A DNA stretch of 64,000 bases from Monocercomonoides exilis PA203 (lineage: Eukaryota; Protista; Preaxostyla): the NCBI GenBank assembly GCA_001643675.2, contig LSRY02000027.1:62001-126000 (forward strand), in the 5' to 3' direction. Positions 19,901 through 64,000 of the stretch are shown here, piece after piece. Position numbers and translations under genes: made by a program. Numbering within the stretch: position 1 is the stretch's first letter; the number at the start of each line of letters is the position of its first letter. The notes under the pieces were generated by a model. That model saw only the letters and a list, made by a program, of their open reading frames with translations, did no database searches and was not told where the DNA came from.

Positions 19901-20491
19901 GGAAGAGACTGAGAAGACGAGCGGAAAGAGGGCTTGATCGGATCGCTTGCTGAAAGAGAGAGCGCAGGAAGAAGATCAATTCCATTGCTTTGCCGAAGCG
20001 AGTGAAGAGAAGACAGCGAAGCAGAAGTCGAAAGATTGAGCGCTTTTGGACCAGGAGGCAGAGAAGTGATTGACGATGTACGAAAATCAGTCATTTGCCT
20101 ATTAGCCGCCTTCACAGATGAAAGTGGACTTTCTTCTGAGTGTTTTCCAAAATGTGCTGCTTCGTTTCGTCTTGTGTTTGAGTATTTCGCTTGGATTGCT
20201 TGGAATGGATCTCGTATCTCTTCCACATCGTTCTCCTGCTCCTTCATAAAATCATCCAAAGATCTCTGTTCTCCTCCTTTTGCTTCTTCCTCCTCATTTT
20301 TCGTTTTCGTGTTGCCCACTTCGCGAAGCATCTGCAAAAACGAGCACAAAACCACTTGGCGCTCCATCGAATAGCACAACGGCATCAGAAGCTGTTTGAA
20401 GTCGAGAAGCGAAAGAGACATCAGACACACACACAGCTCAGGAACAAGGAAGATCGTCTCTGAATAATGGAATATTCTGCGCGGTGGAATG

Positions 20492-20523
<32 letters not shown>

Positions 20524-20542
20524 AGAAGAAGAAGAAGAAGAA

Positions 20543-20581
<39 letters not shown>

Positions 20582-23500
20582 GGAACTAGCTTCTCCAAAT
20601 CCGTCAGCTTGTTTTGCTCTTCTTTCTGTGATTCTTCTTTTCCTTCGTTCTGTTTTGTTGTTCCACTTTCATTTTGATGGCTTCTTTTCTTCTTCTTCTT
20701 CTTCTTCGTGTGTGTCTCTTCAACTGAGCTTGTTGTGAGTGTTTTGATTGTCGTCACTTCGAGAAGAGGCTGATTTCTGTCTTTGATGTCGACACCCCAT
20801 CGCTTCTGGTAATATTCATAAAAAGTGCCTGCCACTTCTTTGTCAGGAAATTCAGACATCGGAGTCATGTCATAGCGATGCCTCAGCACACAATACATCG
20901 ATGAGGACGCTGTTCGGTTCAAAAACACAGAAAACACTAAAACAGAAAAAAAAATCAGAAAAATTAGAAAAAATAGAATTGAAAAAAGATATTTATTATT
21001 TCATAAATGGATAATTATAGTCATTTTGAGAAAGAAAGTGTACATACTTGCAGAAGGGTTGAACTGTTCTTCGAAAGAAGACTGCTCTTTTGCTGCTTGT
21101 TGTGCTGCTGTCTTCGGAGTCATCTTTGCTGCCTGGTTGAATGTTTTGTATCGCTGGCTGGCTGATGTTGTTGAGGATGAATACATTGAACGATAGTTTG
21201 GAATAACAACTGATCCAATTGGAGGCAATTCGATTCCACCAGAAGAAGAAAAAGATGATGATGATGACTTATTAGGAGATTTTATTGAATGATCAGCATT
21301 CACAGCAGATGAGTCGGTGCCATAGGATGTGTGCAGCGGTGATTTAAGTCGAAGACGAATTGCATTTTCTGTTCTGTCTGTTGAATGCCTTAAGCTATTC
21401 AAAAGTTGATTGGCTGGAAACATTGATGGACTTGTGATTTGTTCAATGAGTGCCCAATCAATTGCAAAATAGTCGCATCCAACTGGTGCTTTTGATTGTA
21501 TTTGTGTGGAATTGCTATATGAACGAGAGGATGATGAGGAAGAGGAAGATGGAAAATGCTTCGGAATTGCTAATGGTGATGGAGGTGGGGGTGGTGGAAG
21601 AGATAGCTTAGATGACTGCATCATAGCTGCTAATCGTGTCATATCAGCAGAAGAAGATGATAATGACGACGACGACGACGATGCTAACTGTTTTGATAGC
21701 AATTCATTGCTTCCACATTCAAATAGCTGGAATGTGGACTCAACAGGGGTGATGAGATATGCAAATGCATCAGCCACACGCGGATTGTGATCGAAATCAG
21801 CGCTTCTTTCGAAGGTGTTCCATTCGTTGTCCACCATCTCCTTCATCTTTGCCACAAGCACTGGGTCGAGCATAGCAGCGGTGGAGTTGTCGAATTCCCT
21901 CATAAAAGCAGAGTAGATGGTCTCATTCACACACTCCCCCACACAAACAGAGGGAGACGAGGCAACAATCGGTGAGGGCGTCAGATAGCGGACAGATGAG
22001 CGACGTTCAAAGAGAGTCGCGTGGAAGAACAGGAGACGCGAGAAAAGAGTGCGGGAGATAGAGAATGGGGCAGGCTGGGCAGAAGAAGAGGAAAGAGGAA
22101 AGAGAGAAAGGCAAGATGAAGACAAAGTGGATGGAATGTTAGGAATGGATGATGAATTGAGATGCGAATATGCTGTTTTTGAAGGAGATAATGTCTTCAC
22201 ATAAACATTGCATCGGAGAATGTATGGCATCTTCATTTTGTCCAACTGCTGATCAGAATATCTCCCTTCAAAACTGCCACCAGCCACGTTGGAAGAAGAA
22301 GAAGAAGAAGAAGCAGAGGCAGAAGCAGATGAATAGCTTCCGTTTTTGTCTTTGTTTGTTTGGAGCCATTTCCGTTTGAGTGTTCTTGCGCCTTCCATCA
22401 CTTCTGGTGTGTTCCATCCCAGTTGAGGCAGAATGCTGTCTGGCACATTCAGAGCAGACGGAAGCAGCGCCAGAGAAGAAGGAAGAGGCGAATGGGTGAG
22501 CATTCCAAAGGGAAAACTGAATGGCAGCGGATGAGACGGTGAGGGGTCAAATGGCAAAGCAGAAGAAGAAGAAGAAGAAGAAGAAGGATATTGAGAGTGT
22601 GTTTGTGTTCCTGATGAACTGCTCCTCTTCAGCTCAACAGTCTTGTTGGGATCAATCTCCGTCTGCTCACATTCAATGAGATGAGTCAGCTTTTCAGCAA
22701 TTTCAGCGTCTTCATCTTCATCTTCATCTTCATCTTCATCATTCTCCATCTCATCGTCTTCTTCATCCTTTCTCTCTCTTTCATTTCTCTTCGTCCTTCT
22801 TTTGCCCCCAACAAATGCATCGAGATTGTCGCCTTTGTCCACTCTCTTTTCGCTTTCAGCAGCAGAAGATGAGTATTGATTGAATGACCCCTTCATTTTG
22901 AACTCAGACGGAAGTGCCACATAAACAGGCACAATCACAAACACTGACAGATACAACTCCAACGTCGATTCTGCAAGCTCTGTTGTCGTCCTTATTCTGC
23001 TTCGTGATTCAACCTGTTCGCTTTTATTTGCTTTCTTTCTTCCGATCATCACAACATCTTCCTCCTCACCTGCCAGTGTGTTCTCATCCGCATTCTGAAA
23101 GTCGTCGTTGATCAGCACTTCCTTGTGCATGTAGCAATAAGGAAACCATTCCTTCCTGCATTTTCTGAGTGACAGACAGAGAGGCACAAATGGGACAGCT
23201 CTGATTGTGCCTATTCTGCCTTTGTATTTGTGCTTGTGCATCTTCTGGAAGAAGAGCATCATGCTCTCCCCATATTTCGCAAGGGCATCTTCTCTTTTGT
23301 CCATCTTGCTGATTTGAAGCTCCTGCAGCCTTTTCTCGTTCTCTCGCCTTTCTTCCTCGTCTTTTTCTGCTTCCATCTCAGTTCCTGCCAACTTTGCTTC
23401 ATCGCCTTCCTCTCCTTCTCCTTCCTCTCCTTCTTCGTCTCCTTCTTCTCCCTTCTCCTTTTTGTCTTTTTCTCCCCATTTTCCAAAAGTAGGCGTCAGA

Positions 23501-26500
23501 TGTTCTGAAAGTATCCCGTTTTCATACATCCTCTTCAGTGCCATCAATGCAGCAATTCTCTTTCCCGACTTCTTCGACGAGCACACAAATGATATCACTG
23601 GATCATTCAGCCCAAAATACGGCGGGACACTCAGCGTCGTTCTGAACATGGTGCCTTCTCTGACGATGCAGCCAGATGGCCACTCGGCAGAGGCAGCGTC
23701 TGAGGCAGACACACATTCATGCTTGAAGATGGGCACGTACTGCACATGCGGATCGTCCTTCGGAATGAGCGAGCACAAATTGTACAGCAACGACACAGAC
23801 GCGCCTGTCGTGACAGTCGCATTCGCTTTCGTCCTCAGCTCAAATCGTCTCTCAACCTCAAAGTTTGGCTTGTCGTCTGCTTTCTCCTCTTCAAAAAAGT
23901 TTCTTCTGCTCTGACTGTGTCTATCGCTCTCCTGGAACATGCTGTCAGCATCCTTTGTGACATCTCCTTCTTTTATGTGCTCTTTTGCTTTCCTCGTCTG
24001 CTCCTTCTCTGCATCCTTAGTATGTTCCACTTTATACATCGTCTTGTGCACCTCGTTATCCTCCCCAATGTGCACATAAACCCCTCCCCCTCGGCGTGCC
24101 CTCCCGCGTGACTGAATATACTGAGGCATGTTCTCAAAGTCGTCATAGCGAATAACAGAGTTGCACCCCTGGACATCGATGCCTTCCTCGCACACACTCG
24201 TCGCAAACAGAAGATTCGCTTTTTCTGAACGGAATGACATAAGCGCCTTGTACTGCCGAGACGTCGTCATCACAGCACCACACCGCTGTTCATACGCCTC
24301 CTGCGTATTTTCGCCGGAAGTTTCGATGTATGCTGAAGCAGGCAAAAACGGAGAAAAGGGAAGAGAAGAGTCACCTGATTGCCCAACAACAAATCTGTTT
24401 GGTGAATGATTCATTCAAAAGTACAATAAATTGAACAGAAAGAAATATGAAAGCATCAGCATTTATACGAACAAAAATATGAATAATAATAATAAAAATA
24501 AAAATACACACTTTGTGTTAAAGAAGTATCTGAGAGCAAGTGTCTGCCGGAAAAGTCTGTATAAAATGTATGTGTCTATTCTCTGCTTCACCAGCACAAG
24601 AGATTTGAATTCATCCCTTCGTCCGGCAAATGCGGTATAAAAACAATTGAAAAGCAAAGAATGGAAATATTGTTGAATCAAAAATAATTGAGATTTTCAA
24701 ACATGATTTTTTTCTTCTTAAAAAATAAATAAAAATAAAAAGCAAACTTCATCCGAATTCGTAGCAATATCAAAAATGCGATGAATGCACGCAGTTTTGG
24801 TGGCAGATAGCAGCTTTTCACTTTTATTTGTGCAAATTCTTCTGTTGTAGTGGGCAGAGAAAGCATATGTGCCAGGATTTTGACTCGTAAAAGGGACATT
24901 TGCTCAAACTGCTTCCTCAGCCTCTGCGATTCCTCGGGTGTATACAACGCATCGTCTGCTTTGATCACATGGAAGATGTTTGGCTCAACCTCAGCAGCTT
25001 CATAAGCAGATGTGTCTGTTGTGCCTGAAGACATTGCAGCATCTTCATTGGGAATTTCAATAAGATCGACACTTTGTCTGTTTTGTGCTATTTTGAGGCA
25101 TTCTTCGAGCGTCGGAGGAATCGTAAGCAGATCCTGAAACACAACAAGCACACCAAAAGCTCCGAAATCGTCTGGTTGTTTGAAATAAATAAAGTGAATG
25201 AAGTTCAAGTGATATTAAAAAGAATAAAATAAAGAGCATAATAATGTGCCAGTTAATGAAATAAAATTATGTTTAGACATGAAACAAAAGATATTTGAAA
25301 TTAATTATGAGATAAAACGAGTTTTTGAGGAAAACATTCAAACTATAAATTTGATCAACGTTTGACAAAATTTTTCTTGTTCTGTCCTTTTTATGTTTTC
25401 CTTTCTGGTTTTCGATTTCAAAATACAGCTGCGTTAAATACAAGAATCGCCAGGCATATTCGTCTGCATTTTTCAGCTGAATAACAGTTGCCTCTGGCAA
25501 ACTTCTTGGCAAATACTCAAAACTGCCAGATGTTACGAAGTCTTCCAGTCTGATGTTCACAAAAATGCATCGATATTGTTTGGTTACAAGAACAACAGAG
25601 AAACCAAAAATGTGTTTGCATACGAATTGCTGAAATTCTGAGTCTGAAATGGACCGAGAGAATGAGCACGTTTCGCTTTTTGCAGATCAATCACTCGGGG
25701 GAGCTTGTATCCTGTCCACTGTGCTGCATTCTTCTTTGCTGTTATTCATTTGCATGTGCAGATGTTTGCATCAAAAAGATTGAATTGAAAATTGTTTGTG
25801 TAATTTTTGATCAAATAAAACAAGAAAGTTTTGCAAACTGAGAATGTTTTTGAATATAAGAATTATTTCTTTTGGACGAGGAGAGTACATGCGAAGCAAT
25901 TTTCTTTGTTTTAACGGTGTTACTAGCTTCGAATTAAACAATTCTTCCATAATTCTCATTTGATCTTCCAATCCACCTGTTCGTACGCAAGGGGATGCTG
26001 TTAACCCTAGAATGTGTGGCATGTTTGCTATGTTATTACGTTCGTAGAAATTTGTCATTATTCTTTTATTCTTTATCACATATGATAAAAAAAATAAGTT
26101 CAAAAACAAAAAAGAAGTAGCAGACAGCATCAAGTTTTTGATGATGATGGCATTCATCAAAAACAATTAATTCAACGTCTTCCATTGAAATATATGCATG
26201 TGACAATATTTCCTCGAATATTTGAACAACCATTACAAGAATATCATTTTCATTCAATTCTTTCATCCAACGATCGGGATCCCAAATGGATGTAACCAAA
26301 CCCCCGTAATAGACACTACAATTATAGTGTAATTCCATTTTAATAACATTGTATTGTTGAATGGCTATCAATTGTGTTGGAGCAAGAAATATAACTTTTC
26401 TTTTGTCAAATTTTTTAGCGGGGCGACGATTATTTTCCAAGAAATGTTTGATAAGATGTACAGCGATTAAAGTTTTTCCCGTTCCTGTTATTTTTTTGGA

Positions 26501-45259: not shown

Positions 45260-48200
45260 ATGAGTAAAACTGATATAAGTGGAGCTGTTCCACAAACAGT
45301 AAAAAGACCAATGTGCTTTAGGCCAACGTCTTGTAAAAGTCAAGTTGAATGCTATTTACATCGAGGGATTGCGTCTTCTGTGTGTATTCTAAATATTTTA
45401 TCGTTTATTGTTGTTGTTTTGGCTTTACAATTTTTGATAAAAGGCAACTGAATTAAACAAGGATTTTAAGTGTGTTAAAAGAAGATTTACAGTAAATGAA
45501 GCAATACGTGAAGCACAAAGATGCCTTAAATGTGTCGATTCTCCATGCCAGGCTTCATGTCCAACTCAGCTTGATATCAGAACATTTAATCATGCCATCT
45601 CCGAGGGTAATTTTTATCTTGCTGCAAAAATTCTTTTTACGCATAATCCTCTTGCATGGACATGTGGACTCCTTTGCCCAAATTTTGATGGATGTAGAGG
45701 CTCATGCTCCCTGACAGATACTGCAATTGGACCTTTGGATATTGGAGAGCTTCATTGCGTTGCTTGTGAAGCTTTCATGAGGATGAATCTTCCTCAAATT
45801 AGAGATCCATCAATAATTTCACAACCATATCACAAAGCAAAGATTGCTTTGATTGGAGCAGGGCCGGCTTCGTTATCATGTGCAACTTACTTGGCAAGAT
45901 TGGGCTACACAGAAATTACAATATTTGAGAAGACAGAATCTCCTGGTGGAACGCCGTTAAATGAGATTCCTGAATTTCGTATTCCTTCATATGTCACAAA
46001 ATTTGAGGTGAAACTTCTTCAAGATTTAGGTGTAAATTTTAAATTTGGTAAAGTATTTGGAAAAGACATTACTGTGCATTCCCTTAAATCAGAAGGATTT
46101 GATGTTATTTTTATTGGAATCGGTTTGCCTGAAGCACAGATGATGAATCCATTTACAACTCATTTGGATGCTTGCAATCTTTGGAACAGCAAAACGTTTC
46201 TTGGTGCAGTTGCAACAGCATCAAAGCCTGATCTTGCTAAAAAAACAGCCTTGGATCTTCCAAATTTGAAAGGACATGTTGTTGTGTGTGGAGCCGGAGA
46301 TGTTGCAGCTGATTGCTGCCAAGCTGCATATCGATGTGGAGCTGATGCTGTGTCTATTGTATTCAGAAGAGGAACAGTGGATATGCGGATGAATCCAGAT
46401 GAAATAGACAGGCTGAGAAGTGCAAAGGTGGAGTTTGTGCCATGCTGCTCTCCGGTTGACATTATAATGGACGAGTCTGGCCAAAAGGCGAGTGGATTAG
46501 TCTGCGAAGTGATGAGGAAAATTCCAGGAACTGAGAAATATGAAAAAGACAACGACCAAAAGCGGATCATCTTCTGCGACCATCTTATCTCTGCTTTTGG
46601 GTCAACTTTAGGAATGGTTCCTGATTCATCGTTCGAGAAGATGCTGAAAGGTGGAAGAATAGAAATTAATCCAGAAACTGGTGAGACTTCAGTTGAAGGA
46701 GTCTTTGCAGGTGGAGATTGTGTCGGTTCAGGAACAATTGTTGCTGCTGTGAATGATGGAAAAATTGCTGCATGGGGTATCCATCGTCGGTTGGCACAGC
46801 TGATAAGTGACATTTCTGTGCCTATTCAACCAACTGAAGTGCCTTCTTTCATGACACAAGTCGATCTTGTAGATACTTCTGTTGATGTTGGAGGACTTCA
46901 ATTACTAAATCCATTTGGCATTGCAGCTGGCCCTTCAACTGAATGTGCTCCAATGATCAAACGTGCATTCAAAGCAGGATTTGGTTTTGCAATAACCAAA
47001 ACTATTCTAGCTGAAGGTGACGAAGAGGGAGAGGTTGAACGAGGAGAAGGGAGTGGGAATCGATGGAGGGTTGAAAACAGAACACCACGAATAGCAGGCG
47101 ATGTTGACAGTGAAACATATATGAACATTGAACTCGAATCTGAGCGCACTATCAAATATTGGGAAACGGAAATACCGAAAATAAAAGCTGAGTATCCAAA
47201 GCACATTTTGATCGCATCAATTCGCTCAAAAGGAAGTGTTGCCAGTTGGATTTCTTTGGCTCAGCGGATGGAGGCAGCTGGTGTTGATGCCCTTCAACTA
47301 AACATCCACCCGTCTTCATCTCCATCTCTGCGCGGCAAGCCGCTTCCTTCTCTCATCATGGACATCCTGAATGCTTTGCACTATGCTGTTTCGATTCCTC
47401 TCTTTCCTAAGATCGGTTGTGGGGCAGTTGGTGGTGGAGGTGCTGAATCTCCCATTATGCCGCTTGCAAAGGCGTGTATCTACGGTTCGGCAGATGGGAT
47501 TGCAGCTGTGCACAGCATGGCAGCAATGCCTCCTCTTTTCGCAGACGGCGAACCTTTGCTGAATGTTGGTGGTAGCACCACATTTGCCTCTTTGACTGGA
47601 AGAGGGATGAGGCCATTTGCACTGGCGTCAATTGCCACTATTGCATCACAGTTTCCGTTTGCGCAGATAATTGCATCTGGTGGTGCTGAGAACTCTCTGA
47701 GCGCATGGCAGTTCATTCAGTGCGGTGCACGGGCTGTATCGTTCAGCTCAGCAATCTTTTCCAGAGGCTTTTCGCTTCTCATTTCTGAATTGCTGCCCGG
47801 ACTGCGCTGGCTGCTGTATGCACGCGGTGACTCTGAGATGAGACTGTGGAAGTCTTTTGTGCCTCCAGCGCTTTTTGATGAAGAACGGAAATTCTGCAGC
47901 AGACGTACATTCGGACCTTTTGCAAAGGAGATGAAAAAAACAGAAATTGAGGCAGTTCTGGCTGCTCCTCTTCCTGTGGAATATCCAGAATACGACAAAT
48001 ACTTGCAATCTTCAAAAGTGAAAGACCAATATGAAGAGACTGCATCTTCATCAAATTCTGCTTCTGCTTCTGCTTCATCTTCCTCATCCAGCTCATCCGC
48101 ATTGTCCACTTCATCCATTCCATCTGTGAGAGAATCCCTCCCATCCACTTCATCATCTGTTGACGGTGTTGTGTCCTCTTGTCTTGCTTCTCTTGTGCCA

Positions 48201-48419
48201 TACTCCTCTCTCAGCCCAGCTATCAAAGTCATCTCAACCATCGATACAGACATGTGCCTTGGATGTGGACGGTGTCAAGTTGCATGTTTTGATGCAGGCT
48301 ATGCGTGCATCGTGTTTGACAAGACCACTCGACTGCCAAAAGTCACTCCAATGTGCCATGGATGCGGATTGTGTGCTTCGGTGTGCCCTGCAAAATGTAT
48401 CCAGATGAAAGCAAAGTAG
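45260..48419 (+). CDS. DPYD: Dihydropyrimidine dehydrogenase-like Fe-S flavoprotein (GltD-like + DHOD-like + ferredoxin domains)
   Basis: EAQRCLKCVDSPCQASCP, NPLAWTCGLLCP, IGAGPASLSCATYLARLGY, GAGDVAADC, GVFAGGD, NPFGIAAGP, FAITKT, NIELES, CLGCGRCQVAC and CHGCGLCASVCP. Intron at ~45380-45492. Start uncertain. Confidence 0.88.
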
Positions 48420-51429: not shown

Positions 51430-51501
51430 GGGCTTGTCCGGGAATCGAACCCGGGACCTCTTGCACCCTAAGCAAGAATCATACCACTAGACCAACAAGC
51501 C
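51430..51501 (-). tRNA. tRNA-Pro(AGG): tRNA-Pro (anticodon AGG)
   Basis: GGCTTGTTGGTCTAGTGGTATGATTCTTGCTTAGGGTGCAAGAGGTCCCGGGTTCGATTCCCGGACAAGCCC. Acceptor stem GGCTTGT/ACAAGCC, A and B boxes, anticodon arm CTTGC-TTAGGGT-GCAAG. Confidence 0.97.
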
Positions 51502-51511
51502 GATGGATAGT

Positions 51512-52480
51512 AGAACTTGTTCGAATTTTCCCTGCCGCACCAAATTGATTGAAGAAATTCGAATTTAGTCTGACTTTTTGAATGTGACTCAATCTCATCG
51601 TATGTTCCTAAATCTCTTTATGGTCGAAATAGTTATTTTTTTGATCACAACTTTTGATCACACATTTTTTTCTGTTTTCCTTTCTAATACTACTAGAACA
51701 TATTCGTCGTTGATATTTTGATATATTGTAGTGTTATTAATAATTTTCGCATGTGCAACCGATTTATTAATTATTTTCAAGTTTGATTCAGTTTTTTTGT
51801 AAACTTGTTGTTTCGGTTTTTTGTGTTAACAAGTTTTATTTTTAAAGTTAATCAAACTGTAATCAATTCCCATTTACATGTCAAAAGAATTTATAATCTA
51901 AAAACTGATGAGTTTTTGATTTTTGTTAAGATTCGACGATTTTTTGGTTTTCATTGTTGTTGTTTGTTATTAATTCAACACTTTAAAGAAATTTTTTATA
52001 TTTTTGATAATAAATTAAATGAAAAATCAATGTTTAATTTTGTTTTTTGTTATTTTATTCTTTTTCAACTTTTTTTCAGGAATTATAAAAAACAACAAAC
52101 ACTTAAAGAAAAAAGAAAATGTGAAATGAAACACTCGAAAACGAATCAATATTATGCAATAATGTTGTTTTTATGAAAAAATTTAAATTATTTCATTTTC
52201 CTCAAATGTTTTTTTATGATTTTGTTATTTTCAAAAAGTTTCAGCAAAATAAATATCTAAACATTTTTTCATTTTGTTATAAATACAAATTAATAAAAAA
52301 GTGTTTCATTTTTATAATAAATAAATCAATAAACTTTAATCGATCACAACTCCCAGAATAATAAGAAATGAATGTGATTTAATCATATCGGTACTGAGTC
52401 AATCTTATTGGAACGAGATCGTTCTCGTACTAATAAGTGAAAGTTAATGCGATATAACTCAGTGAATTCGAATAAGTTCT
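51512..52480. mobile_element. Array unit 0: non-autonomous element, 969 bp, 16-bp TIRs, flanked by AGT on both sides
   Basis: Left end AGAACTTGTTCGAATT; right end reverse complement AGAACTTATTCGAATT (15/16 match). AGT at 51509-51511 and 52481-52483. No credible ORF. Confidence 0.85.
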
Positions 52481-52483
52481 AGT

Positions 52484-54812
52484 AGACGTTTTTCGAATCT
52501 TGAGCAAAAAATAAATTTGATTTTATAACATAGATGTCAACCTCTTTTTTTGGAATTGATTCAATCAAATTGGAACTTTCTCAATCTCACTTGGTCCAAA
52601 ATAGGAATTACGAAATGTTTGAAAAACTGATCTTATTATTTTTTTGTTTCTTCTTTTATTTGATTCCTTCGTTTCGATTATTCACAAAACTTTGGTATTT
52701 TGTGCATCTATATAAAATCCATGGTGTTTTGATCTGTTTTCAGCAAATTTTGAGTTTTTTTATAGTTCAAAAGGTTTGCATTTATTTTTTATTCTTTCAC
52801 ATGATATCCTTGTGATTGAGCATTTATATTAATTCTAATGATTATTTTCATATGTTTTAAGCTATTAACAGCTGTGACGTTTTATTTTAAATTAGGATCA
52901 TTAATAATACTTTTTCAACGTTTATTTCATATAAAACTCAAGGGGAAACAACGATTTTTGTTTCATTTCAATATTTTTCATAAATATTTTATGACATACA
53001 TACAATAAGTTATATTTTTTATTCTCTTTTATTTTTTTTTTTTAAAAAAAGGTGAATGATTGAAAAATAGAAATAATAAAAGAAAAAACTAATTTCTTTG
53101 CTCCAAAAGAAGCCTTAAAGGACTTGGCGTAATTCTTTTCGCCTTTTCTGCTTCTGATGAACGTGGAGTTGAAGGAAAAGGAGATGAAGAAGATGCAGAA
53201 GAATGTTGGATTGATTTCCACTGACCTGGTAAACACCAGGCCATAGAATTATCATCTTCGTCACTATCATTTTCTTCCAAATCAATCCTTTTCGTTTCAT
53301 TTCTATCTTTTTCTTCTTTTTCTTCTTTTTCTTCGATTTTTCGCTTTTCTTTCTTTTCTTCTTCACATTTCTTTTTCAGTGCGCCTTCCTTTTCATTCTG
53401 TGAAATATCTGAATAAAAAAAAGAGAAAATATAATGGTTGAAAGAGTTATCAAAAAAAATCAAATAAAAGATAATGAATATAAATATGGGTAAAGTAATG
53501 AATAATAAACTGTCTATTTGTGCGTGTAAAGTAGTTATTGTGGGTGTAATTGACAAGCTCGGATTCAATCTATTTTTCAATTTTATTCGATATCTCTCAT
53601 TCGCTATTTGTCTTGCTTTTTGTTTTTGTAAATGCTCCGTCCACAAGTTGTCCAAAATACGCTGATTTGCTTCCCCATCTGCTCTTGTCAATGGATTTCG
53701 TAATATATGAAAATTGGTCAAACAACAAGCCACACAGAAATAATCAGCAACCCTTTCAACTTCAAATGGCCACTGTCTTCTAAAAACTGAAAAGAGGGTC
53801 TTCAGACGACCGAAAAACCGTTCCACGATGACTCGATGAGTTGCTAGCTCTGGTGTTCCCACTGGTTTGGTGATAATTGCAGCCAAATCAGGTCTCGCTC
53901 CTATGTAAGCCGAATCAGCCAATATTTTTGCCCCTCCCAAACGATCCAAAAATTGAGGATAATGATCTTTAAAGACTGTAAAGTCATGAGTGGAGCCAGA
54001 ATGAATTGCACTGATAGTACTTGCTGTCCCAACTTTGGGATTGACTCCAACCTCAGCTTTCACACAATATGTGTGATGTTTCCCGCTAAAAAACTTTTTC
54101 CCAAAGTCTAATCGACCTCCAGGTCTGTTGATGGGAATGATTGTGCAGTCCAAAACAATTCCAACCTCCTTCATCACTTCAATCCTGTCAGGGCGAAATG
54201 TCAAAAACAAATCTGCTAATGGAGCTCTGATATGAGAAACAATACTGTGAAGAAGTCTGACAAGAGCGTTTTGAGTTTCATAGAAAGGTGTGGATAATAA
54301 AAGTGTGAGTGTTGTTGAACCGTGATGAAGAAAAGTGAGTAACAAGAATAACTGTTCATCAAAATTGTTGATTGCTTTCAGTTTGCCTCGATGATGAGGA
54401 ACTTCCATTTGAAGAATATGTATGAGAAAATCAAATTCTTCTTTTGTGAATCCAGTAAGTCGAAAAAAAGAAGAAACAGGATCATCAAAAAAGTCACAAG
54501 CTTTTTTGATGATGGAAATTTTTTCTTCCTTTTGAAGTGATTCATTCCGTTGTGGAATAATATTTCTCCTCTCCACACTCTTCAAAACGTCCAAAAAATT
54601 TGAATGTGACATCAGAAAAAAATAAGAACAACTTTCGTTTGATCAAAACCAAATATTGAAATTTTGTTATTAATGATCACGAAACCAACATTTGTGAATA
54701 TGAATGTTATTGAATCAAATCAAATAAGTTTGATTCTATTCGGTTTTCAATCGATATTATTAAGTGTTAATATATCTTTTGCGGATGCATCAAATAAAAT
54801 ACAAAAGGTTCT
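52484..54812 (-). mobile_element. Array unit 1: DDE DNA transposon, 2329 bp
   Basis: Bounded by AGT at 52481-52483 and 54813-54815. Ends AGACGTTTTTCGAAT..AATACAAAAGGTTCT. Carries an intact transposase. Confidence 0.85.
53089..54612 (-). CDS. IS5/PIF-Harbinger/ISL2EU-type (DDE_Tnp_4-like) transposase, intact; probable 102-nt intron 53409-53510
   Basis: HTH-like FFRLTGF..EQLFLLLTFLHHG; catalytic VLDCT, LADSAY and IVERFFGRLK; RPGG..FSGKHH.YCVK; GSTHDFTVF. Confidence 0.9.
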   Translation of the reverse strand: MSHSNFLDVLKSVERRNIIPQRNESLQKEEKISIIKKACDFFDDPVSSFFRLTGFTKEEFDFLIHILQMEVPHHRGKLKAINNFDEQLFLLLTFLHHGSTTLTLLLSTPFYETQNALVRLLHSIVSHIRAPLADLFLTFRPDRIEVMKEVGIVLDCTIIPINRPGGRLDFGKKFFSGKHHTYCVKAEVGVNPKVGTASTISAIHSGSTHDFTVFKDHYPQFLDRLGGAKILADSAYIGARPDLAAIITKPVGTPELATHRVIVERFFGRLKTLFSVFRRQWPFEVERVADYFCVACCLTNFHILRNPLTRADGEANQRILDNLWTEHLQKQKARQIANERYRIKLKNRLNPSLSITPTITTLHAQIDSLLFITLPIFIFIIFYLIFFDNSFNHYIFSFFYSDISQNEKEGALKKKCEEEKKEKRKIEEKEEKEEKDRNETKRIDLEENDSDEDDNSMAWCLPGQWKSIQHSSASSSSPFPSTPRSSEAEKAKRITPSPLRLLLEQRN

Positions 54813-54815
54813 AGT

Positions 54816-57146
54816 AGACGTTTTTCGAATCTTGAGCAAAAAATAAATTTGATTTTATAACATAGATGTCAACCTCTTTTTTTGGAATTGATTCAATCAA
54901 ATTGGAACTTTCTCAATCTCACTTGGTCCAAAATAGGAATTACGAAATGTTTGAAAAACTGATCTTATTATTTTTTTGTTTCTTCTTTTATTTGATTCCT
55001 TCGTTTCGATTATTCACAAAACTTTGGTATTTTGTGCATCTATATAAAATCCATGGTGTTTTGATCTGTTTTCAGCAAATTTTGAGTTTTTTTATAGTTC
55101 AAAAGGTTTGCATTTATTTTTTATTCTTTCACATGATATCCTTGTGATTGAGCATTTATATTAATTCTAATGATTATTTTCATATGTTTTAAGCTATTAA
55201 CAGCTGTGACGTTTTATTTTAAATTAGGATCATTAATAATACTTTTTCAACGTTTATTTCATATAAAACTCAAGGGGAAACAACGATTTTTGTTTCATTT
55301 CAATATTTTTCATAAATATTTTATGACATACATACAATAAGTTATATTTTTTATTCTCTTTTATTTTTTTTTTTTAAAAAAAGGTGAATGATTGAAAAAT
55401 AGAAATAATAAAAGAAAAAACTAATTTCTTTGCTCCAAAAGAAGCCTTAAAGGACTTGGCGTAATTCTTTTCGCCTTTTCTGCTTCTGATGAACGTGGAG
55501 TTGAAGGAAAAGGAGATGAAGAAGATGCAGAAGAATGTTGGATTGATTTCCACTGACCTGGTAAACACCAGGCCATAGAATTATCATCTTCGTCACTATC
55601 ATTTTCTTCCAAATCAATCCTTTTCGTTTCATTTCTATCTTTTTTCTTCTTTTTTCTTCTTTTTCTTCGATTTTTCGCTTTTCTTTCTTTTCTTCTTCAC
55701 ATTTCTTTTTCAGTGCGCCTTCCTTTTCATTCTGTGAAATATCTGAATAAAAAAAAGAGAAAATATAATGGTTGAAAGAGTTATCAAAAAAAATCAAATA
55801 AAAGATAATGAATATAAATATGGGTAAAGTAATGAATAATAAACTGTCTATTTGTGCGTGTAAAGTAGTTATTGTGGGTGTAATTGACAAGCTCGGATTC
55901 AATCTATTTTTCAATTTTATTCGATATCTCTCATTCGCTATTTGTCTTGCTTTTTGTTTTTGTAAATGCTCCGTCCACAAGTTGTCCAAAATACGCTGAT
56001 TTGCTTCCCCATCTGCTCTTGTCAATGGATTTCGTAATATATGAAAATTGGTCAAACAACAAGCCACACAGAAATAATCAGCAACCCTTTCAACTTCAAA
56101 TGGCCACTGTCTTCTAAAAACTGAAAAGAGGGTCTTCAGACGACCGAAAAACCGTTCCACGATGACTCGATGAGTTGCTAGCTCTGGTGTTCCCACTGGT
56201 TTGGTGATAATTGCAGCCAAATCAGGTCTCGCTCCTATGTAAGCCGAATCAGCCAATATTTTTGCCCCTCCCAAACGATCCAAAAATTGAGGATAATGAT
56301 CTTTAAAGACTGTAAAGTCATGAGTGGAGCCAGAATGAATTGCACTGATAGTACTTGCTGTCCCAACTTTGGGATTGACTCCAACCTCAGCTTTCACACA
56401 ATATGTGTGATGTTTCCCGCTAAAAAACTTTTTCCCAAAGTCTAATCGACCTCCAGGTCTGTTGATGGGAATGATTGTGCAGTCCAAAACAATTCCAACC
56501 TCCTTCATCACTTCAATCCTGTCAGGGCGAAATGTCAAAAACAAATCTGCTAATGGAGCTCTGATATGAGAAACAATACTGTGAAGAAGTCTGACAAGAG
56601 CGTTTTGAGTTTCATAGAAAGGTGTGGATAATAAAAGTGTGAGTGTTGTTGAACCGTGATGAAGAAAAGTGAGTAACAAGAATAACTGTTCATCAAAATT
56701 GTTGATTGCTTTCAGTTTGCCTCGATGATGAGGAACTTCCATTTGAAGAATATGTATGAGAAAATCAAATTCTTCTTTTGTGAATCCAGTAAGTCGAAAA
56801 AAAGAAGAAACAGGATCATCAAAAAAGTCACAAGCTTTTTTGATGATGGAAATTTTTTCTTCCTTTTGAAGTGATTCATTCCGTTGTGGAATAATATTTC
56901 TCCTCTCCACACTCTTCAAAACGTCCAAAAAATTTGAATGTGACATCAGAAAAAAATAAGAACAACTTTCGTTTGATCAAAACCAAATATTGAAATTTTG
57001 TTATTAATGATCACGAAACCAACATTTGTGAATATGAATGTTATTGAATCAAATCAAATAAGTTTGATTCTATTCGGTTTTCAATCGATATTATTAAGTG
57101 TTAATATATCTTTTGCGGATGCATCAAATAAAATACAAAAGGTTCT
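54816..57146 (-). mobile_element. Array unit 2: near-identical copy of unit 1, 2331 bp
   Basis: Bounded by AGT at 54813-54815 and 57147-57149. Differs from unit 1 by two extra T in homopolymers near 55640-55655. Confidence 0.85.
55421..56946 (-). CDS. DDE transposase, copy 2; C-terminal tail frameshifted by homopolymer insertions
   Basis: Same sequence as copy 1 to ..KIEEKEEK, then a frame change. The ancestral tail survives in ORF 55421-55612. Confidence 0.8.
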
Positions 57147-57149
57147 AGT

Positions 57150-59562
57150 AGAACTTTTCTGAATTGAGTGTGTCATTTCAAATTCATCATGAAAATTTAA
57201 TTTAGAATAATCTAATCGAAATTATATCAATCTTTTTCAAATTAGGATCAACTTTTTTTGGTCGTTTTCAGGAATTATCAAATCTTCCATGTTGATCAAA
57301 CATTTTTTTAACTTTTTGTATATCTTTGTTGAAAGAAAAAATTGTGTAGCCAAATTTCAAAAGTGTGTTTGTTATGTTTCAATTAATCTGTTTCCACATT
57401 GTTTTTCTTTGTTTAATCTGTTCAAGTACCCGAATTCGTTTGTATTCATTTTTTGTGTTTTCTACTATGTTAATCAACATTTTTCAATTTATAGCAAGCA
57501 AATTTGGTGTATAAACAGAAATCGAAGTATTTTTCAATAATTAAGTGTTTATTATGATTATTTAGTGAAATAATGAAATTCACATCCATTCAAATAGTAA
57601 ATTTCAAAAATTTCCAATAAAAAGGAACTTTTTTCATGTCATTTTATAATATTTTACAATGAAATCATAAATAAAAATAGAAAAAATCTTTCACAGCTTG
57701 TTTTTGTTAAAAATAAAATTGTGTGAATGTGTTTCTCTAAAAAAAAATAAAAGCATTAATTATGACTCGATAGCAGCTCCTGTAACACCCTGGGCGTGAT
57801 TCTTTTTTCTTTCTGGTGAGTTAATGAAGCAGAAGTAGCAGTTGAAGAAGAAGAAGCAGAAGATGAAGCTGAAGATGAAGATGAAGCGTAAGAAGAAGAA
57901 GAAGGAGTAGTAGCAGCAGGAAAAATTGAAGGAAAACAATCAGATGATGAAGAATTTTAAAATCTAATCGATTTCATTCGATATGGTTAATGCCACGATT
58001 TGGAAAAATCTTCATGATCATCACTTTCGATTTCTTTTTCTATTTCATTCGTAATTTTTTTGCTTCTTTCTATTTTTTCTATGATCTTCAATTCTTCTTT
58101 TTTTTCATTTTCATTTTTTTCTGAAGAAATTCGAATATCTGGTTCTTCGTCCATATCAGAAGATTCTAAATTATTAATAATTGATATTTGTATGACATAA
58201 AAAAAATTATTTTGCACTCTTATTTTCAAAAAAAATAGAGAATAAAAGAAATGCAGGCCTTCTTCTTGAACATGAAGTGACGTGCTTCTTGAGGCAGGTG
58301 AGTGATCTGGATTGAGTCGATTTTTTAGTCGAATTCTATATTGTTCATTGGATCTTTGTTTTGCTTCATGTCTGTGAATGTTTTGAACTTGAAGATCAGT
58401 GAAAATACGAAGATTTGCTTCCATATCGCTCGCAGTTAGTGGGTTCTGTAAAATATGGAAATTTGTTAGACAAGCTGCTACAGCAAAATAACTTCCAATT
58501 TTGTCAATATCAAAAGGCCAGTTTTGTCGAAAAACAGCAAAAATCGTTTTCATACGTCCAAAAAATCTTTCGATAATAACCCTATGTTTCGCCAACTCTG
58601 GGGTTCCTACTGGTTTTGTAATGACTGCACCAAATTCCGACTTTGCTCCAATATATGCAGAATCTGCAATAATTTTTGATCCTCCAAGTTTCGAACAGAA
58701 TATGGGATAATGGTCCTTGAATATGGTATAGTCATGGGTTGAACCCGGGTAAATGTCACTAATTGTACTAGCAGTTCCAACTTTCAAATTCACTCCAACT
58801 TCAACCTTTGTGCAATATATATGGTGTTTTCCACTAAAGAATTTTTTTCCATTTGATAATGTTCCTTCTGGTCTGTTTGTGGGGATTATCGTGCAATCCA
58901 CAGCCAGCGCCACATCTCTTAATTCGTCAACACGATCAGGCCTGTATGTTAAAAAAATATCAATAAGCGGAAGTTTGATATCTCTGACAATGCTGTGAAG
59001 AAGTTGTGTTGTTGCTCCAAGAGTTTCGTAGTAGGATGATGCAAGTTGATGAGTAAGAGTTGTGGAACCCAGATGAAGAAAATTGAGTAGAAGAAAAAGT
59101 TGATCATCAAAATTGTTAATTGATTTTTCTCTTCCTCTGTGCTGAATTGTTTCGTGTTGAATAATTCGAAGAAGAAGATCAAATTCGTTTCTGGTGAAAC
59201 CAGTGAGACGAAAGAACCCTCGCAAAGGGTCTTCAATACGTTTTAATGCAAATTGGATTACTGTTTCTTTTTTGATTTCTTTCTTAATTTCAACGTGTTG
59301 CGGAAGTGCGATTCTTTTTTCTACATGTTCCAAAATATCCAATATTTTGTTCTGTGACATAGCAAAAAACACTCTTGAACTGAAAATTGATCACAATTCC
59401 ATAATTCGAAAATCTGTTTGAGGATCAATTTCCCAACATTTTATCAATTGAAATTCACTGAATCAATTTGAAATTGATTATGACTTATTGAAATTAGATT
59501 ATCATAAACGCAATTTGGTTTGTCCATAAATAAAATTGATAGAGAAAATTTGAAAAAGGTCT
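57150..59562 (-). mobile_element. Array unit 3: diverged DDE transposon, 2413 bp
   Basis: Begins AGAACTTTTCTGAATT after AGT; ends AATTTGAAAAAGGTCT before a TGT spacer. Confidence 0.8.
57756..59360 (-). pseudogene. DDE transposase, copy 3; two in-frame TAA in the C-terminal exon
   Basis: AVDCT, IADSAY and IIERFFGR are intact. Premature TAA at 57987-57989 (WH*P, versus WHLP in copy 4) and 57957-57959. The frame then continues to ..RITPRVLQELLSSHN*. Confidence 0.8.
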
Positions 59563-59565
59563 TGT

Positions 59566-61936
59566 TGAGCTTTTTCGAATTGAGCACATAATTTTGATTT
59601 GACTCAATCAATTTGCATTTAGTCAATCTTATTTGATTTGACTTAATCAAATCTGATTTGAATTGATCATTTTTTGATCTTTTTTAAAAACAATTATGAG
59701 TCAATTACGATCAAGATATTGACTTATTTTTTCAAACTCTCTACCTTGTTGGCAGATCTTAAAAATGCGACAAGTTTGTGAATTCTTTTTTTGATTGTTT
59801 TAAGTATTTATTGTTTATTTTCAACATCTCTTCTTCCGATTCGGATCGTAATGAACAATTTGAAACTAACGTTTTCAACATGTGCAAGAGATGATCAACA
59901 GTTAAAATTTTATTTATAACTGTATTTCAAAAAAACAAAAAGCTCTTTCGATCAAATTTTTTTCACTTTTTTGTTTTTGTTAGGTTTTTTTTTCATTTCA
60001 TTTTTATTAGTCTATTTTACATAGAAAACTAACAAATATATAGAAATTTTATAAATAAACACAATTTTTGTTTTTCATTCAAAAAAATAAATTCAGAATT
60101 GGAAATATTAATTAATAGAGATTATTAAAAAGATGAGATGGTTGAAAAAAGAAGTCAAAGAAAAATTAAATGATATTCACTTTTTATTCAGTAACAATTG
60201 GAGAACAGATGGGGGTTTATTTTGTTTTGAATCAACAGAAGAGGAAGAAGAAGCAGTAGATGAAGATGATGATAAAAAGGAAGAAGAAGGTTGTGTTTGT
60301 GTAAATGAAGGAAAAGGCTGAGTTGAAGATGGAGAAAAAATACTAATAGATTTCCATTGATGTGGCAGGTGCCAAGCTTGAGAATTATCACAATTTTGAT
60401 CTTCATCAAAATCTTTTCTTTCTTTTTCTAAAACCTGTTCCCTTTGCTCGCTTCTTTGTTCCAAAACTTCGCAGTTCGCTCTTTCTCTTCTTTCTTTCGC
60501 TTTTTCTGCTTCGTACGCCCTTTGATCATCATCAGAAGCATCTAAAATAAAAAAATATGGTAAAATGATGTTTATAAAAATGAAAAAATAGAAAAAGAAA
60601 ATAAAAAATAATGGTAAAAAAGTGAAAGATAAGCCTCCTGTTTCTGCCAAAATTGTAGTTATTGTGGGTGTCAGGGTATTTTCTGGATTGAGTTTATTTT
60701 TCATTTTGGCGAAATATCAAGCATTAGCCACCTTCTTTGCATCAACTTTTCTCAAGTAATTCGAATATAGCTCCTCCAAAAACAATGTATTTGCTTCAAA
60801 ATCCTTATTTGTGAGTGGATTGTGCAAGATATGAAAGTTTGTGAGGCAGCAAGCCACTGAAAAATAGTCCCCAATACGCTCCATTTCAAAAACCCACGGA
60901 TGACGGAAGACAGAAAAGAGAGTTTTGAGTCTTCCAAAGAATCTTTCAACAATAACACGATGAGATGCAAGCTCAGGAGTTCCAACGGGCTTTGTAATAA
61001 TCGCCCCAAGCTCTGGTTTCGCTCCTATGTAAGCGGAATCGGCCAAAATCTTTGCTCCTCCAAGCTTTTGAACAAATGTGGGGTAATGTTCTTTGAAAAT
61101 AGTGAAATCGTGAGTTGACCCAGAGTAGATAGAACTGATTGTACTTGCTGTTCCCACCTTGGGGTTCACTCCCACCTCCGCCTTGACACAATAGATGTGA
61201 TGCTTCCCTGAGTAGTATTTTTTTCCAAACTCCAACCTCCCTCCAGGCCTGTTTGTAGGTATTACTGTGCAGTCAAGCACAATTCCCACCTCCTTCATTT
61301 GCTCCAAACGATCTGGACGAAATGAAAGAAAAAGATCTGCAAGTTGAGATTTTAAATTTGATGTTGTTGAATGAAGAAGTCGAACTGTTGATGTTTGAGA
61401 TTCGTGTTTTGATTGAGATATGACGTGAGTTAAAGAAATAGAGCCATGGTGAAGAAAAACTAACAAAAGAAAAAGTTGTTCATCCAAAGATTCGATTGAT
61501 TTTGCCCTTCCACGATGAGGTTGGGCTGATGATGAGAGAAGACGAAGAAGCAAGTCGAATTCATAACGAACAAACCCAGTCAGTCGGTGAAAACCGAAAG
61601 ATGGGTCAGTAAATTTTTTGCAAAATTTATCGATGATTGATTGCTGATCATCATCAGATTTAATCTCAATATGAGATGGCATTACATTTCTTTTTTCCAC
61701 GCTCGTTAAAATATCGAAAAATGGAGATTGAGACATGAATAATGAAGTTGAAAAAAAGTTAAATACAAAAATGCCCATTAATAACAATTATTATCGATCA
61801 TATTCGCACCCACAATTATTGTAATTTGCATTGACTCAATCAAATCGATTTGTCTCGATCTAATTTGAATTATATAAAACTTATCTGCTTTAGCAAAGGC
61901 AAATAATATATGACTTGTTCAAATCGCATAAGTTCT
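59566..61936 (-). mobile_element. Array unit 4: diverged DDE transposon, 2371 bp
   Basis: Begins TGAGCTTTTTCGAATT; ends AAATCGCATAAGTTCT followed by AGT at 61937-61939. Confidence 0.8.
60177..61736 (-). pseudogene. DDE transposase, copy 4; one in-frame TGA at 60717-60719
   Basis: ORFs 60717-61787 and 60177-60704 are in the same frame. ANA*YFAKMKNKL aligns with ANERYRIKLKNRL (Arg to stop). Confidence 0.82.
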
Positions 61937-61939
61937 AGT

Positions 61940-64000
61940 AGAACTTCATTCATTTTTCCGAATCGCGAAAATTCGACTGAATCACATCTATTTAGTTAGA
62001 ACTTTTTGGATTTTTCTTTAACTTTTCGAACCTTTCTTTAACTTTTTCGTGCCCAGTTGGGGAATTTTATTTTTTATGATGTGATCTTTCTTATTTTTGT
62101 TTTCCAGTTATTTCAATAGCACTTTGAAAATAAGAAGCGTGTTACAAAGAGAAGGTTTATATATCAGTTTGAAAACTTTCAAATTTACTTTTTTTTAAAA
62201 TATGTTCAATTTTGATTCTTCTTTTGAATATAACATATAAACCAGATATCCTGACACTGACTTCGACAATATTCAATATAAATTTGAATTGCCGTGTTTA
62301 TTTTTATGAAATTGATGAATTTATCGATTGAATTTAAACATTTGTTGAAAAAATATTCTTCTGAATGAAATTTTCAATTTTTGTTTGTTTGTTAGTTATT
62401 TAATAGCATATCAGTATTTTCTTTTATATTTTTTGTAAAAAAAAGTTAAAATAAAATTCAAGAACTCATTATTAAAAGCTTTCTGTTTAATTTTTGAAAA
62501 AGTTAAAAATTTGTGATGTGAAAAGGAAAAAACAATAAAAACTTAATGCTTTTCTTTGAGAAGAGCTTGCAACGGTGTTTGTGTTGGTTGTTGACTTAAG
62601 GCATTTGATAAAATTGTTGATGAAGAGGCAGAGGAACTGGGCGTTGAACGAAACAATCGAGTTGATTTCCACTGGTTAGGGATGTACCAGGAATGCTGAT
62701 CTCTTGTATCTTTTCTTTCTTTATTTGTCATTTCGCTCTCTTTTTCTATTTTTTTGTCTCTTTCCTCTTTTTCTTCCAATGAGACTTTCTTTTTCATTTC
62801 TTTCGTTATATTTTCTTGGATCTGAACGTCTTTTGGGTCTTGGGACTCATCCGAATCATCTGAAAAAGTAAAGTTATGGCATATAAATATATAAAAATGA
62901 ATAAATAACATGAAAAAGAACAATATGGGTTGAAAAATAAAAAACACACTATCTGCCTGAATAGGCAGAATTGTTAATCTTGGTGATGGAACTTGGCTCG
63001 GATTAAGTCTATTTTTCATTCTAACTCTGTATTGTTCATTTGCAATGTTCTTTGCCTTCTGTCTTTTCAAATACTCAATTGTCAGAGCATCTAAAAAACG
63101 TTGATTTGCATCCAGATCATGAGTAGTCAAAGGATTTTTCAAAATATGGTAATTTGTTAAACAACAGGCAACAATAAAATAATCTGCTATTCTTTCAGGC
63201 TCAAAAGGCCACTGCCTCCGGAAAACAGGAAATAGCGTCTTGAGCCTTCCAAAAAACCGTTCAACTATTACTCTTTTCGATGCCAATTCTTGAGTACCCA
63301 CAGGTTTAGTAATAATTGCATCAAGCTCTGGCTTTGCCCCGACATAGGCAGAGTCAGCCAGTATTTTCGAGCCTTTCAGTTGATCCTTAAAGAGCGGATA
63401 ATGCTCCTTAAACACTGTGAAATCATGAGTGGACCCTGTGTGAACAGAACTTATTGTGCAGGCTGTTCCAACAGCAGGGTTCACTCCGACTTCGACCTTC
63501 ACACAATAGATGTGGTGTTTGCCACTGTAGAATTTTTTGCCATTCATTAGACTACCTCCTGGCCTGTTTATTGGTAAAACGGTGCAATCCAGAACAATTG
63601 CAACATCATTCATATCGATTAAGCGATTCTCTCTGAATGTCAAAAATAAATGGGTAAGTGGCTCTTTGATATCGGAAACAATTGAATGAAGCAATTTGAC
63701 TGTTGAATTTTTTGTTTGATAGTAAGAAGATGCCAAAATATGAGTTAATGTTGTAGAGCCATCATGCAAAAAATTCATTAAAAGAAATAACTGATCTCTG
63801 AACTCGTTCACTGCTCTTTCCTTTCCTCTGTGGGGAGAAACCTCATCGCTAAGAAGTCGCACAAGGAGATCGAATTCAAACTGGGCAAAACTTGTTAGGT
63901 ATAAGGGTACGATATGGGAGTTTTCAAAACTCCTTAAAACATATTTATTTGTAATTCATATGGTCACTATTCATCATTATTCATGTTTATAATCATCGGA
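61940..64000 (-). mobile_element. Array unit 5: diverged DDE transposon, truncated by the window end
   Basis: Begins AGAACTTC after AGT at 61937-61939. Contains transposase copy 5. Confidence 0.75.
62543..63955 (-). pseudogene. DDE transposase, copy 5; N-terminus decayed (stops from 63956 upstream)
   Basis: VLDCT, LADSAY and IVERFFGRLK are intact. The conserved FFRLTGF reads PLYLTSF and is preceded by in-frame stops, so no full-length start. Confidence 0.75.

Follow-up and report, generated by a model that had tools for sequence, protein, structure and literature searches.

The 64,000-nucleotide stretch of Monocercomonoides exilis DNA analyzed here (the window; C22:62001-126000 of the 82.3-Mb, 101-contig assembly, genome G000, in which contigs carry C and loci L labels) ends in a head-to-tail array of DDE transposons that abuts a tRNA-Pro(AGG) gene. 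Members of this transposon family, which belongs to the IS5/PIF-Harbinger/ISL2EU (PHIS) type, insert at a set distance of 5-12 bp from the start of tRNA genes, and this target is set by the tRNA gene and not by sequence. The positional specificity over many unrelated leaders, the 3-bp target duplication, the strand bias, the polarity of the arrays and the use of the same target interval by other transposon families are all observed directly, and we hold them with high confidence.

Insertion at tRNA gene starts across the genome

The family accounts for at least 120 transposase matches in the genome (242 candidates, 120 of them scored). At 29 tRNA or tRNA-like genes, covering 18 isoacceptors, an element end is found 5-12 bp upstream, and the leaders of these genes are unrelated in sequence, which rules out one unique target sequence. 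Empty tRNA leaders have no fixed triplet in common, and many of them end in a CAA-like motif. As with the retrotransposon Ty3, the insertions thus fall in a narrow interval upstream of many different tRNA genes and leave the gene intact.

The association was quantified on contigs C1-C25, where our list of tRNA genes (pattern hits, with some genes missed) is fullest. Nine of the 67 transposases there are directly adjacent to a tRNA start, against 0.2 expected at random; 20 lie within 5 kb upstream of a tRNA gene on the same strand (0.5 expected) and 33 within 15 kb (1.6 expected, with a maximum of 7 over 2000 random placements). When the nearest tRNA gene is within 15 kb, the transposase lies upstream on the same strand in 32 cases, upstream on the opposite strand in 3 and downstream in 2. 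Among the 30 best copies, 9 have a tRNA or tRNA-like gene touching the proximal end, 13 another element of the family, and 4 a pogo-like or related one. A systematic sample of every third tRNA-pattern hit on the same contigs (n = 32 genes) has a family end at 8 genes, two of them assigned by end pattern together with the presence of a transposase no more than 5 kb away, a pogo-like end at 4 and a third family at 1.

An earlier note on this DNA had proposed intersecting family copies with tRNA genes, and these counts bear out the association it anticipated. Its picture of repeated, oriented PHIS-type insertion with a 3-bp duplication at a tRNA-anchored site holds genome-wide, but the single site it described is an interval of 5-12 bp at 29 genes, and its fixed orientation is a strong bias only, with reversed cases at L020 and L067. 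Targeting is preferential, not absolute. Mostly solitary and randomly placed copies, which the note had named as evidence against itself, are not the genome-wide rule, although some intact solitary copies away from tRNA genes do exist (L052, L053, L054 and L056).

Genes with an A box and a B box that ARAGORN does not call are also targeted (L017, L059 and C91); L059 and L017 gave no ARAGORN call when checked, and L017 also no Rfam match. Multi-copy tRNA-like A/B-box genes occur at C17:742239, C8:101003, C1:479208, C1:757502 and C1:2181968, and further ones at C9:729617, C10:34105, C10:693751, C41 and C91:1075294. These are possibly small RNAs of RNA polymerase III (Pol III) or repeats resembling short interspersed nuclear elements, and some of them are transposon targets. 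Another tRNA-like gene, at L013:3644-3720 (C23:429455) and C62:191369, appears to contain a short intron, and its loop is unusual (CT followed by TTA or TTT); neither ARAGORN nor Rfam calls it.

The target interval is shared with other transposons. A pogo-like family of ~1.65 kb with TA duplications lies directly upstream of tRNA genes on C11, C12, C15, C16, C47, C56 and C8, and its elements interleave with the PHIS arrays (L031:2645-4327, L057, L058 and L059; on C22, C16, C47 and C41). At its C-terminal end, the pogo-like transposase carries the conserved motif LPxxPP[QE]W. Two further families occupy the same interval, one of ~4 kb starting GTGAGGGAT and one starting GCGTGTCAAA (L060, which is C62:222316-226325, L073, L110 and L017).

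The array at tRNA-Pro(AGG), its junctions and its polarity

The whole array measures 15.8 kb and comprises seven elements at one site, six of them PHIS elements and the terminal one pogo-like (Table 1). The six units, their five 3-bp spacers and the outer AGT had been placed exactly to the base by the earlier note, which was also right that no host DNA lies between units, that a tRNA gene anchors the array and that the five transposases share one strand. This is the strand of the tRNA gene, and all five are directed at it. Unit 1 starts 10 bp from the first base of the tRNA. The same leader also precedes tRNA-Pro(TGG) on C47, where it is occupied by a pogo-like element. Reading past the end of the window, as the note had advised, places the end of unit 6 at C22:127643; an AGT and a pogo-like element follow, and beyond C22:129327, where that element ends, the array gives way to other sequence.

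Table 1. Features of the tRNA-Pro(AGG) array and of the unit 2 transposase gene (window positions)
Feature	Position	Strand	Source or remark
tRNA-Pro(AGG) gene, intact, array anchor	51430..51501	-	ARAGORN
Host 5' leader of tRNA-Pro(AGG)	51502..51508	.	sequence
Outer 3-bp target duplication AGT, -10 to -8 of mature tRNA	51509..51511	.	
Unit 1, 969-bp non-autonomous element, 15/16 terminal inverted repeat	51512..52480	.	
Shared duplication AGT	52481..52483	.	
Unit 2, 2329-bp autonomous element, intact	52484..54812	-	
Unit 2 exon 2: charged linker, WxLPxQW[KR]S motif (53212-53238), Ser-rich stretch, PLxxLL end	53089..53408	-	
Unit 2 predicted phase-1 intron, 102 nt, GT..AG	53409..53510	-	
Unit 2 exon 1, coding for the DDE domain and a helical N-terminal part	53511..54612	-	
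Shared duplication AGT	54813..54815	.	
Unit 3, twin of unit 2	54816..57146	-	
Shared duplication AGT	57147..57149	.	
Unit 4, second subfamily (59% amino acid identity to unit 2), stop codon near 57989 within exon-2 motif	57150..59562	-	
Degenerate spacer TGT	59563..59565	.	
Unit 5, third subfamily (66% amino acid identity to unit 2), premature stop near 60719	59566..61936	-	
Shared duplication AGT	61937..61939	.	
Unit 6, fourth subfamily (68% amino acid identity to unit 2)	61940..64000	-	runs on to C22:127643
Start of 1385-bp Merlin/IS1595-like element nested in unit 6 gene	63898..64000	-	ends C22:127282

The units differ in their kinship. A search of unit 1 for a transposase remnant found no coding sequence; its ends are 79-84% similar to those of an autonomous subfamily, and an 87% copy on C13 likewise lies directly upstream of a tRNA gene, a tRNA-Ala. 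Sisters of unit 2 with 97-98% DNA identity are found on C8, C12, C34 and C56, those of unit 5 (98%) on C62 and at C22:1.11 Mb, and a 99% identical copy of unit 6 on C62. Units 2 and 3, at 100% amino acid identity, show no substitution between them, against 30-33 to the sisters on other contigs, and most likely arose as a local pair, through unequal exchange or re-insertion. In unit 3, exon 2 is shifted by two one-base homopolymer insertions, which may be sequencing errors. The claim that the array is not simply the amplification of one copy stands for the diverged subfamilies, which have kin on other contigs, and probably does not extend to the unit 2/3 pair. Subfamily grouping is the only use made of the transposase tree, a quick, midpoint-rooted version with long outer branches.

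Support for the array comes from the assembly and from short-read contigs of 2016, which carry the tRNA/unit 1 and unit 2/unit 3 joins without differences, with fewer than 31 letters on one side. These contigs derive from the same sample and study as the assembly and hence do not represent an independent strain. The exact 11-mer of the junction occurs 21 times in the 82-Mb genome, mostly at element junctions that were seen directly, the remainder beside family copies as judged by coordinate; this recurrence is not chance.

Several other features lie in or near the array. The Merlin/IS1595-like element in unit 6 (63898-64000 and L031:898-2282) has an intact-looking transposase frame and is flanked by an 8-bp duplication, the left copy at 63890-63897. 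A decayed copy of the dispersed subfamily described below, 1.5 kb beyond the outer end, is probably separate from the array. Just past the distal end there is a near-perfect palindrome of ~220 bp (L031:4840-5060), with related sequence near other arrays. Arrays also frequently include members of a symmetric, non-autonomous family (~970-990 bp; L050, L051, L032 and L061) whose inverted repeats are long.

Solitary copies define the target duplication. At L052, L053 and L056, ATT stands on both sides of the element and the bases outside it differ, indicating a duplication of 3 bp with the form ANT. Between AGT and TAGTA, the two possibilities raised by the earlier note, the 3-bp length is upheld, but the triplet is not always AGT. 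A 5-bp TAGTA duplication is ruled out by the differing outer bases in the solitary copies and in L012, L017 and L020, and a one-base duplication with TA-ended repeats is not favored. Paired flanks read AGT, ACT, ATT or AAT, with TGT, GTT and AAA as the few exceptions. Five copies have mismatched middle bases in the duplication. Two sampled copies, L009 and L010, are subfamily chimeras, and recombination within arrays is therefore the likely cause of these mismatches.

The terminal inverted repeats are short and often imperfect, spanning only ~5-7 bp in units 2-5, and the perfect inverted match is often below 11 bp. Most element ends begin with AG, and several subfamilies begin with TG at the proximal end. 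Each junction restores a T-ANT-A site from the element ends (A..., ...T). The triplet at L020 still reads ACT on the tRNA strand although element and array are reversed there, which indicates that the triplet follows the tRNA.

Arrays at other loci were read as small stretches and thus seen in part, and their junctions reveal a polarity. At L005, L021, L029 and C37:337598 a newcomer has split an older element at its tRNA-proximal end, while no split distal end was found among the junctions seen; 6-bp spacers occur at L021 and L026. Stop codons increase with distance from the tRNA (rho 0.39, p 0.008), and stop-free copies make up 11 of 14 within 3 kb of a tRNA versus 10 of 32 further out (p 0.004). 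In these statistics the copies are not independent, four of the tRNAs were found by looking beside elements, and the stops may partly be long-read errors. Within the tRNA-Pro array, a lesion is present in each of units 4, 5 and 6 but not in unit 2, which is intact. Unit 1, the most tRNA-proximal element, lacks a close sister, at odds with a simple age order. A single 52-kb chain on C62 is unsupported, with no family junction in C62:197.2-204.5 kb, and no anchor was found for the chain at C62:219.6-235.9 kb within the DNA examined.

The transposase and its relatives

All five transposases match the DDE_Tnp_4 profile (PF13359) with E values of 1e-19 to 2e-24, and the IS5 profile NF033581 matches weakly. 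The DDE residues D155 and E264 are invariant and D233 is near-invariant; D210 is also invariant. The PHIS-type motifs recognized in the earlier note are thus confirmed. Its description of a family with a single open reading frame has to be replaced, as the gene has a predicted two-exon structure: an AT-rich stretch in the long frames has a donor (GT or GC) at a position common to all subfamilies, together with an AG acceptor, and the public gene model P0006 uses the same splice. Examined separately, exon 1 gives a confident structure model with a predicted local distance difference test score (pLDDT) of 89.6, for which the fold matches are DDE enzymes only, all weak (E above 0.001), and exon 2 contains the conserved WxLPxQW[KR]S motif. 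A sequence search of the PDB with the transposase returned no match. The nearest named relatives are proteins of Blattamonas, Entamoeba invadens and Phytophthora at 27-36%. Three homologous loci in Blattamonas have no adjacent tRNA, and six other metagenomic loci, on short contigs, showed none either.

Short terminal inverted repeats and a 3-bp duplication agree with the PHIS definition of inverted repeats plus a 0-3 bp AT-rich duplication. The family is a member of the PHIS superfamily and, on the evidence of the ANT duplication, resembles the Pangu/Harbinger2 group. Pangu (Repbase Harbinger2) is a PHIS group (Han et al. 2015, PMC4482050; PMC12730594) with inverted repeats of 11-40 bp starting AG or GG and with an ANT duplication (PMC4482050), so that the link to Pangu drawn in the earlier note fits the triplets found here. 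The two further share DDE_Tnp_4 and the lack of a Myb/SANT partner. Their repeats agree in part, being short and mostly starting AG in the M. exilis family too. Most Pangu elements have a second open reading frame without known domains, Pangu-1_PInf having a single one (PMC4482050), whereas the M. exilis family has one two-exon gene with a motif-bearing tail. The Pangu paper describes no tRNA targeting or stacking (PMC4482050). Canonical PIF/Harbinger (TWA duplication, Myb/SANT second frame) is ruled out by the ANT duplication and the absence of a second frame, and ISL2EU (2-bp AT duplication, THAP domain, YqaJ second frame) by the 3-bp duplication and the absence of both domains in Pfam.

Among targeted elements, Dada is likewise a eukaryotic DDE transposon tied to tRNA or small nuclear RNA genes, and tandem Dada-U1 copies with one duplication between them have been reported (PMC3706591, PMC8869645). 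Dada is MuDR/hAT-like, recognizes a sequence inside the gene and disrupts it (PMC3706591, PMC8869645), with 6-7 bp duplications and no terminal inverted repeats. The M. exilis family is not Dada: its copies are placed by distance, lie outside the gene and make 3-bp duplications. Casposon and Tn7 arrays resemble ours in reusing one site, at some tRNA genes, with a single duplication shared between neighbors, but they are prokaryotic, use sequence-defined sites at tRNA 3' ends and have unrelated enzymes (PMC4779613). Position-specific, non-disruptive insertion at or near the Pol III start of many tRNA genes is known from Ty3, Ty3p, Tj1, Tca8, DGLT-A, NLTR-A and TRE5 (PMC5911963). These are retrotransposons, whereas the M. 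exilis family consists of cut-and-paste DNA transposons.

What guides insertion

We propose that a PHIS-type cut-and-paste transpososome would be delivered to the start region of Pol III type-2 (A box/B box) genes. As reconstructed for tRNA-Pro, a pogo-like element came in first, at a TA of the tRNA leader; the AGT of the array formed from the A of the pogo TA duplication and the first GT of the pogo end, and PHIS elements then inserted serially at that AGT. Because the promoter is internal and untouched, the target interval stays in place after each insertion, so that the next element lands between the tRNA and the previous element. It does so in the same duplicated triplet (3-bp spacer), in a neighboring triplet (6-bp spacer) or in an ACT in the proximal end of the older element. 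Arrays thus grow from the tRNA side and record the order of insertion.

The transposase probably contacts the bound TFIIIB/TFIIIC/Pol III complex as its landmark, and the candidate for making this contact is the exon-2 tail with its WxLPxQW[KR]S motif. The strand bias argues for such a protein tether, as does a dispersed sister: a nested subfamily whose tail differs and whose motif has D in place of K has about 9 of its 11 C1-C25 copies away from listed tRNAs, three copies (L052, L053 and L042) having been checked directly. There is precedent in Ty3, Tj1 and TRE5, which use the Pol III initiation complex as a landmark, TFIIIB being the known host factor for Ty3 and TRE5 (PMC5911963).

Several observations weigh against a tether of this kind. 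The solitary copies L054 and L056 keep the motif intact and yet are away from tRNAs, so that the correlation between motif and targeting is not clean. In another organism, a complete 1.73-kb relative (L067, from public run SRR21023576; 37% identity) starts 5 bp upstream of a tRNA-Asp, which speaks for the positional targeting, but it is in reverse orientation and lacks the exon-2 tail and motif; this one case indicates that the motif is not required everywhere. That four families use one interval could be explained by a common DNA structure no less than by four separate tethers. Furthermore, 5S rRNA genes also use TFIIIB. None of the nine 5S flanks holds an insertion, and the large 5S array on C15 has no transposase match, although array homogenization could hide insertions there; 5S genes are targets of Tj1 (PMC5911963), and TRE5 uses them as well. 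Separately, the 5S genes (L096-L104) have a TATA-like element ~25-30 bp upstream, and the sampled tRNA genes do not.

The same positional targeting might come about without a protein tether, if bent, opened or nucleosome-free DNA at Pol III starts were simply the best substrate, an explanation that we consider possible but less than probable. The convergence of PHIS, pogo-like and two further families on the same few bases would follow from it, as would targeting by L067 without the motif and the existence of off-target copies. On the other hand, open DNA alone, acted on by a symmetric transpososome, would hardly produce a strand bias of 32 to 3; a subfamily within the same clade is mostly dispersed; 5S starts are unused; and the Merlin-like element went elsewhere, into the unit 6 gene. 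A bolder extension of the tether, which we regard as doubtful, is that a short Trp motif at the C terminus acts as a portable module by which several unrelated cut-and-paste superfamilies of oxymonads came, convergently, to recognize a single Pol III-factor surface; the PHIS and pogo-like motifs share P-x-[QE]-W. If true, such a module would send a DDE transposase to the tRNA start site, making polar, time-ordered arrays.

IS30 and IS911 insert beside or into existing ends of their own family. A transposase with this habit could build stacks after a tRNA had merely seeded the first event, which would accommodate the 13 of 30 best copies with another family end at the proximal side, the rebuilt T-ANT-A sites and the insertions within older ends. 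It is improbable as the main cause, since 9 of the 30 directly abut a tRNA gene, only proximal ends are split, the four solitary copies grew no stacks and the tRNA-Pro array began on a pogo end; self-targeting as the main cause is thus largely refuted, with a possible contribution to the choice of triplet. Random insertion with selective survival is very improbable: the site harms neither tRNA nor protein genes in a gene-dense genome, but 46% of the assembly is repeat (PMC8767320), neutral space is therefore plentiful, and selection cannot yield an 8-bp interval on one side only and in one orientation. An origin of the array in local tandem duplication of a single element or gene is equally improbable, as is an artefact of assembly. 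The substitution-free units 2 and 3 and the lack of a read set spanning the array would suit such readings, but the other unit pairs have 61-62% DNA identity, each unit groups with copies on other contigs, and the junctions are present in short-read contigs, so that duplication holds at most for the unit 2/3 pair.

Elsewhere in the window, a helicase C-terminal motif and two RNase III-like motifs in the long frames at 17398-24414 (-) point, by eye, to a Dicer gene, and 45735-48419 (+) holds a frame that resembles dihydropyrimidine dehydrogenase, likewise by eye.

Homing to Pol III start sites is a textbook safe-haven strategy of retrotransposons, the only elements listed for it in a review (PMC5911963), and we found no report of a eukaryotic cut-and-paste element with Ty3-like positional targeting in the open-access literature, which leaves out most subscription journals and Repbase Reports. 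A recently active, single-gene transposon of 2.3 kb offers a simple system for how a transposase reads the Pol III initiation complex, with the dispersed sister subfamily as a natural control, and the family might serve as a basis for targeted integration that is non-disruptive. The polar arrays, in turn, can serve as a relative clock of when several transposon families were active within one genome.

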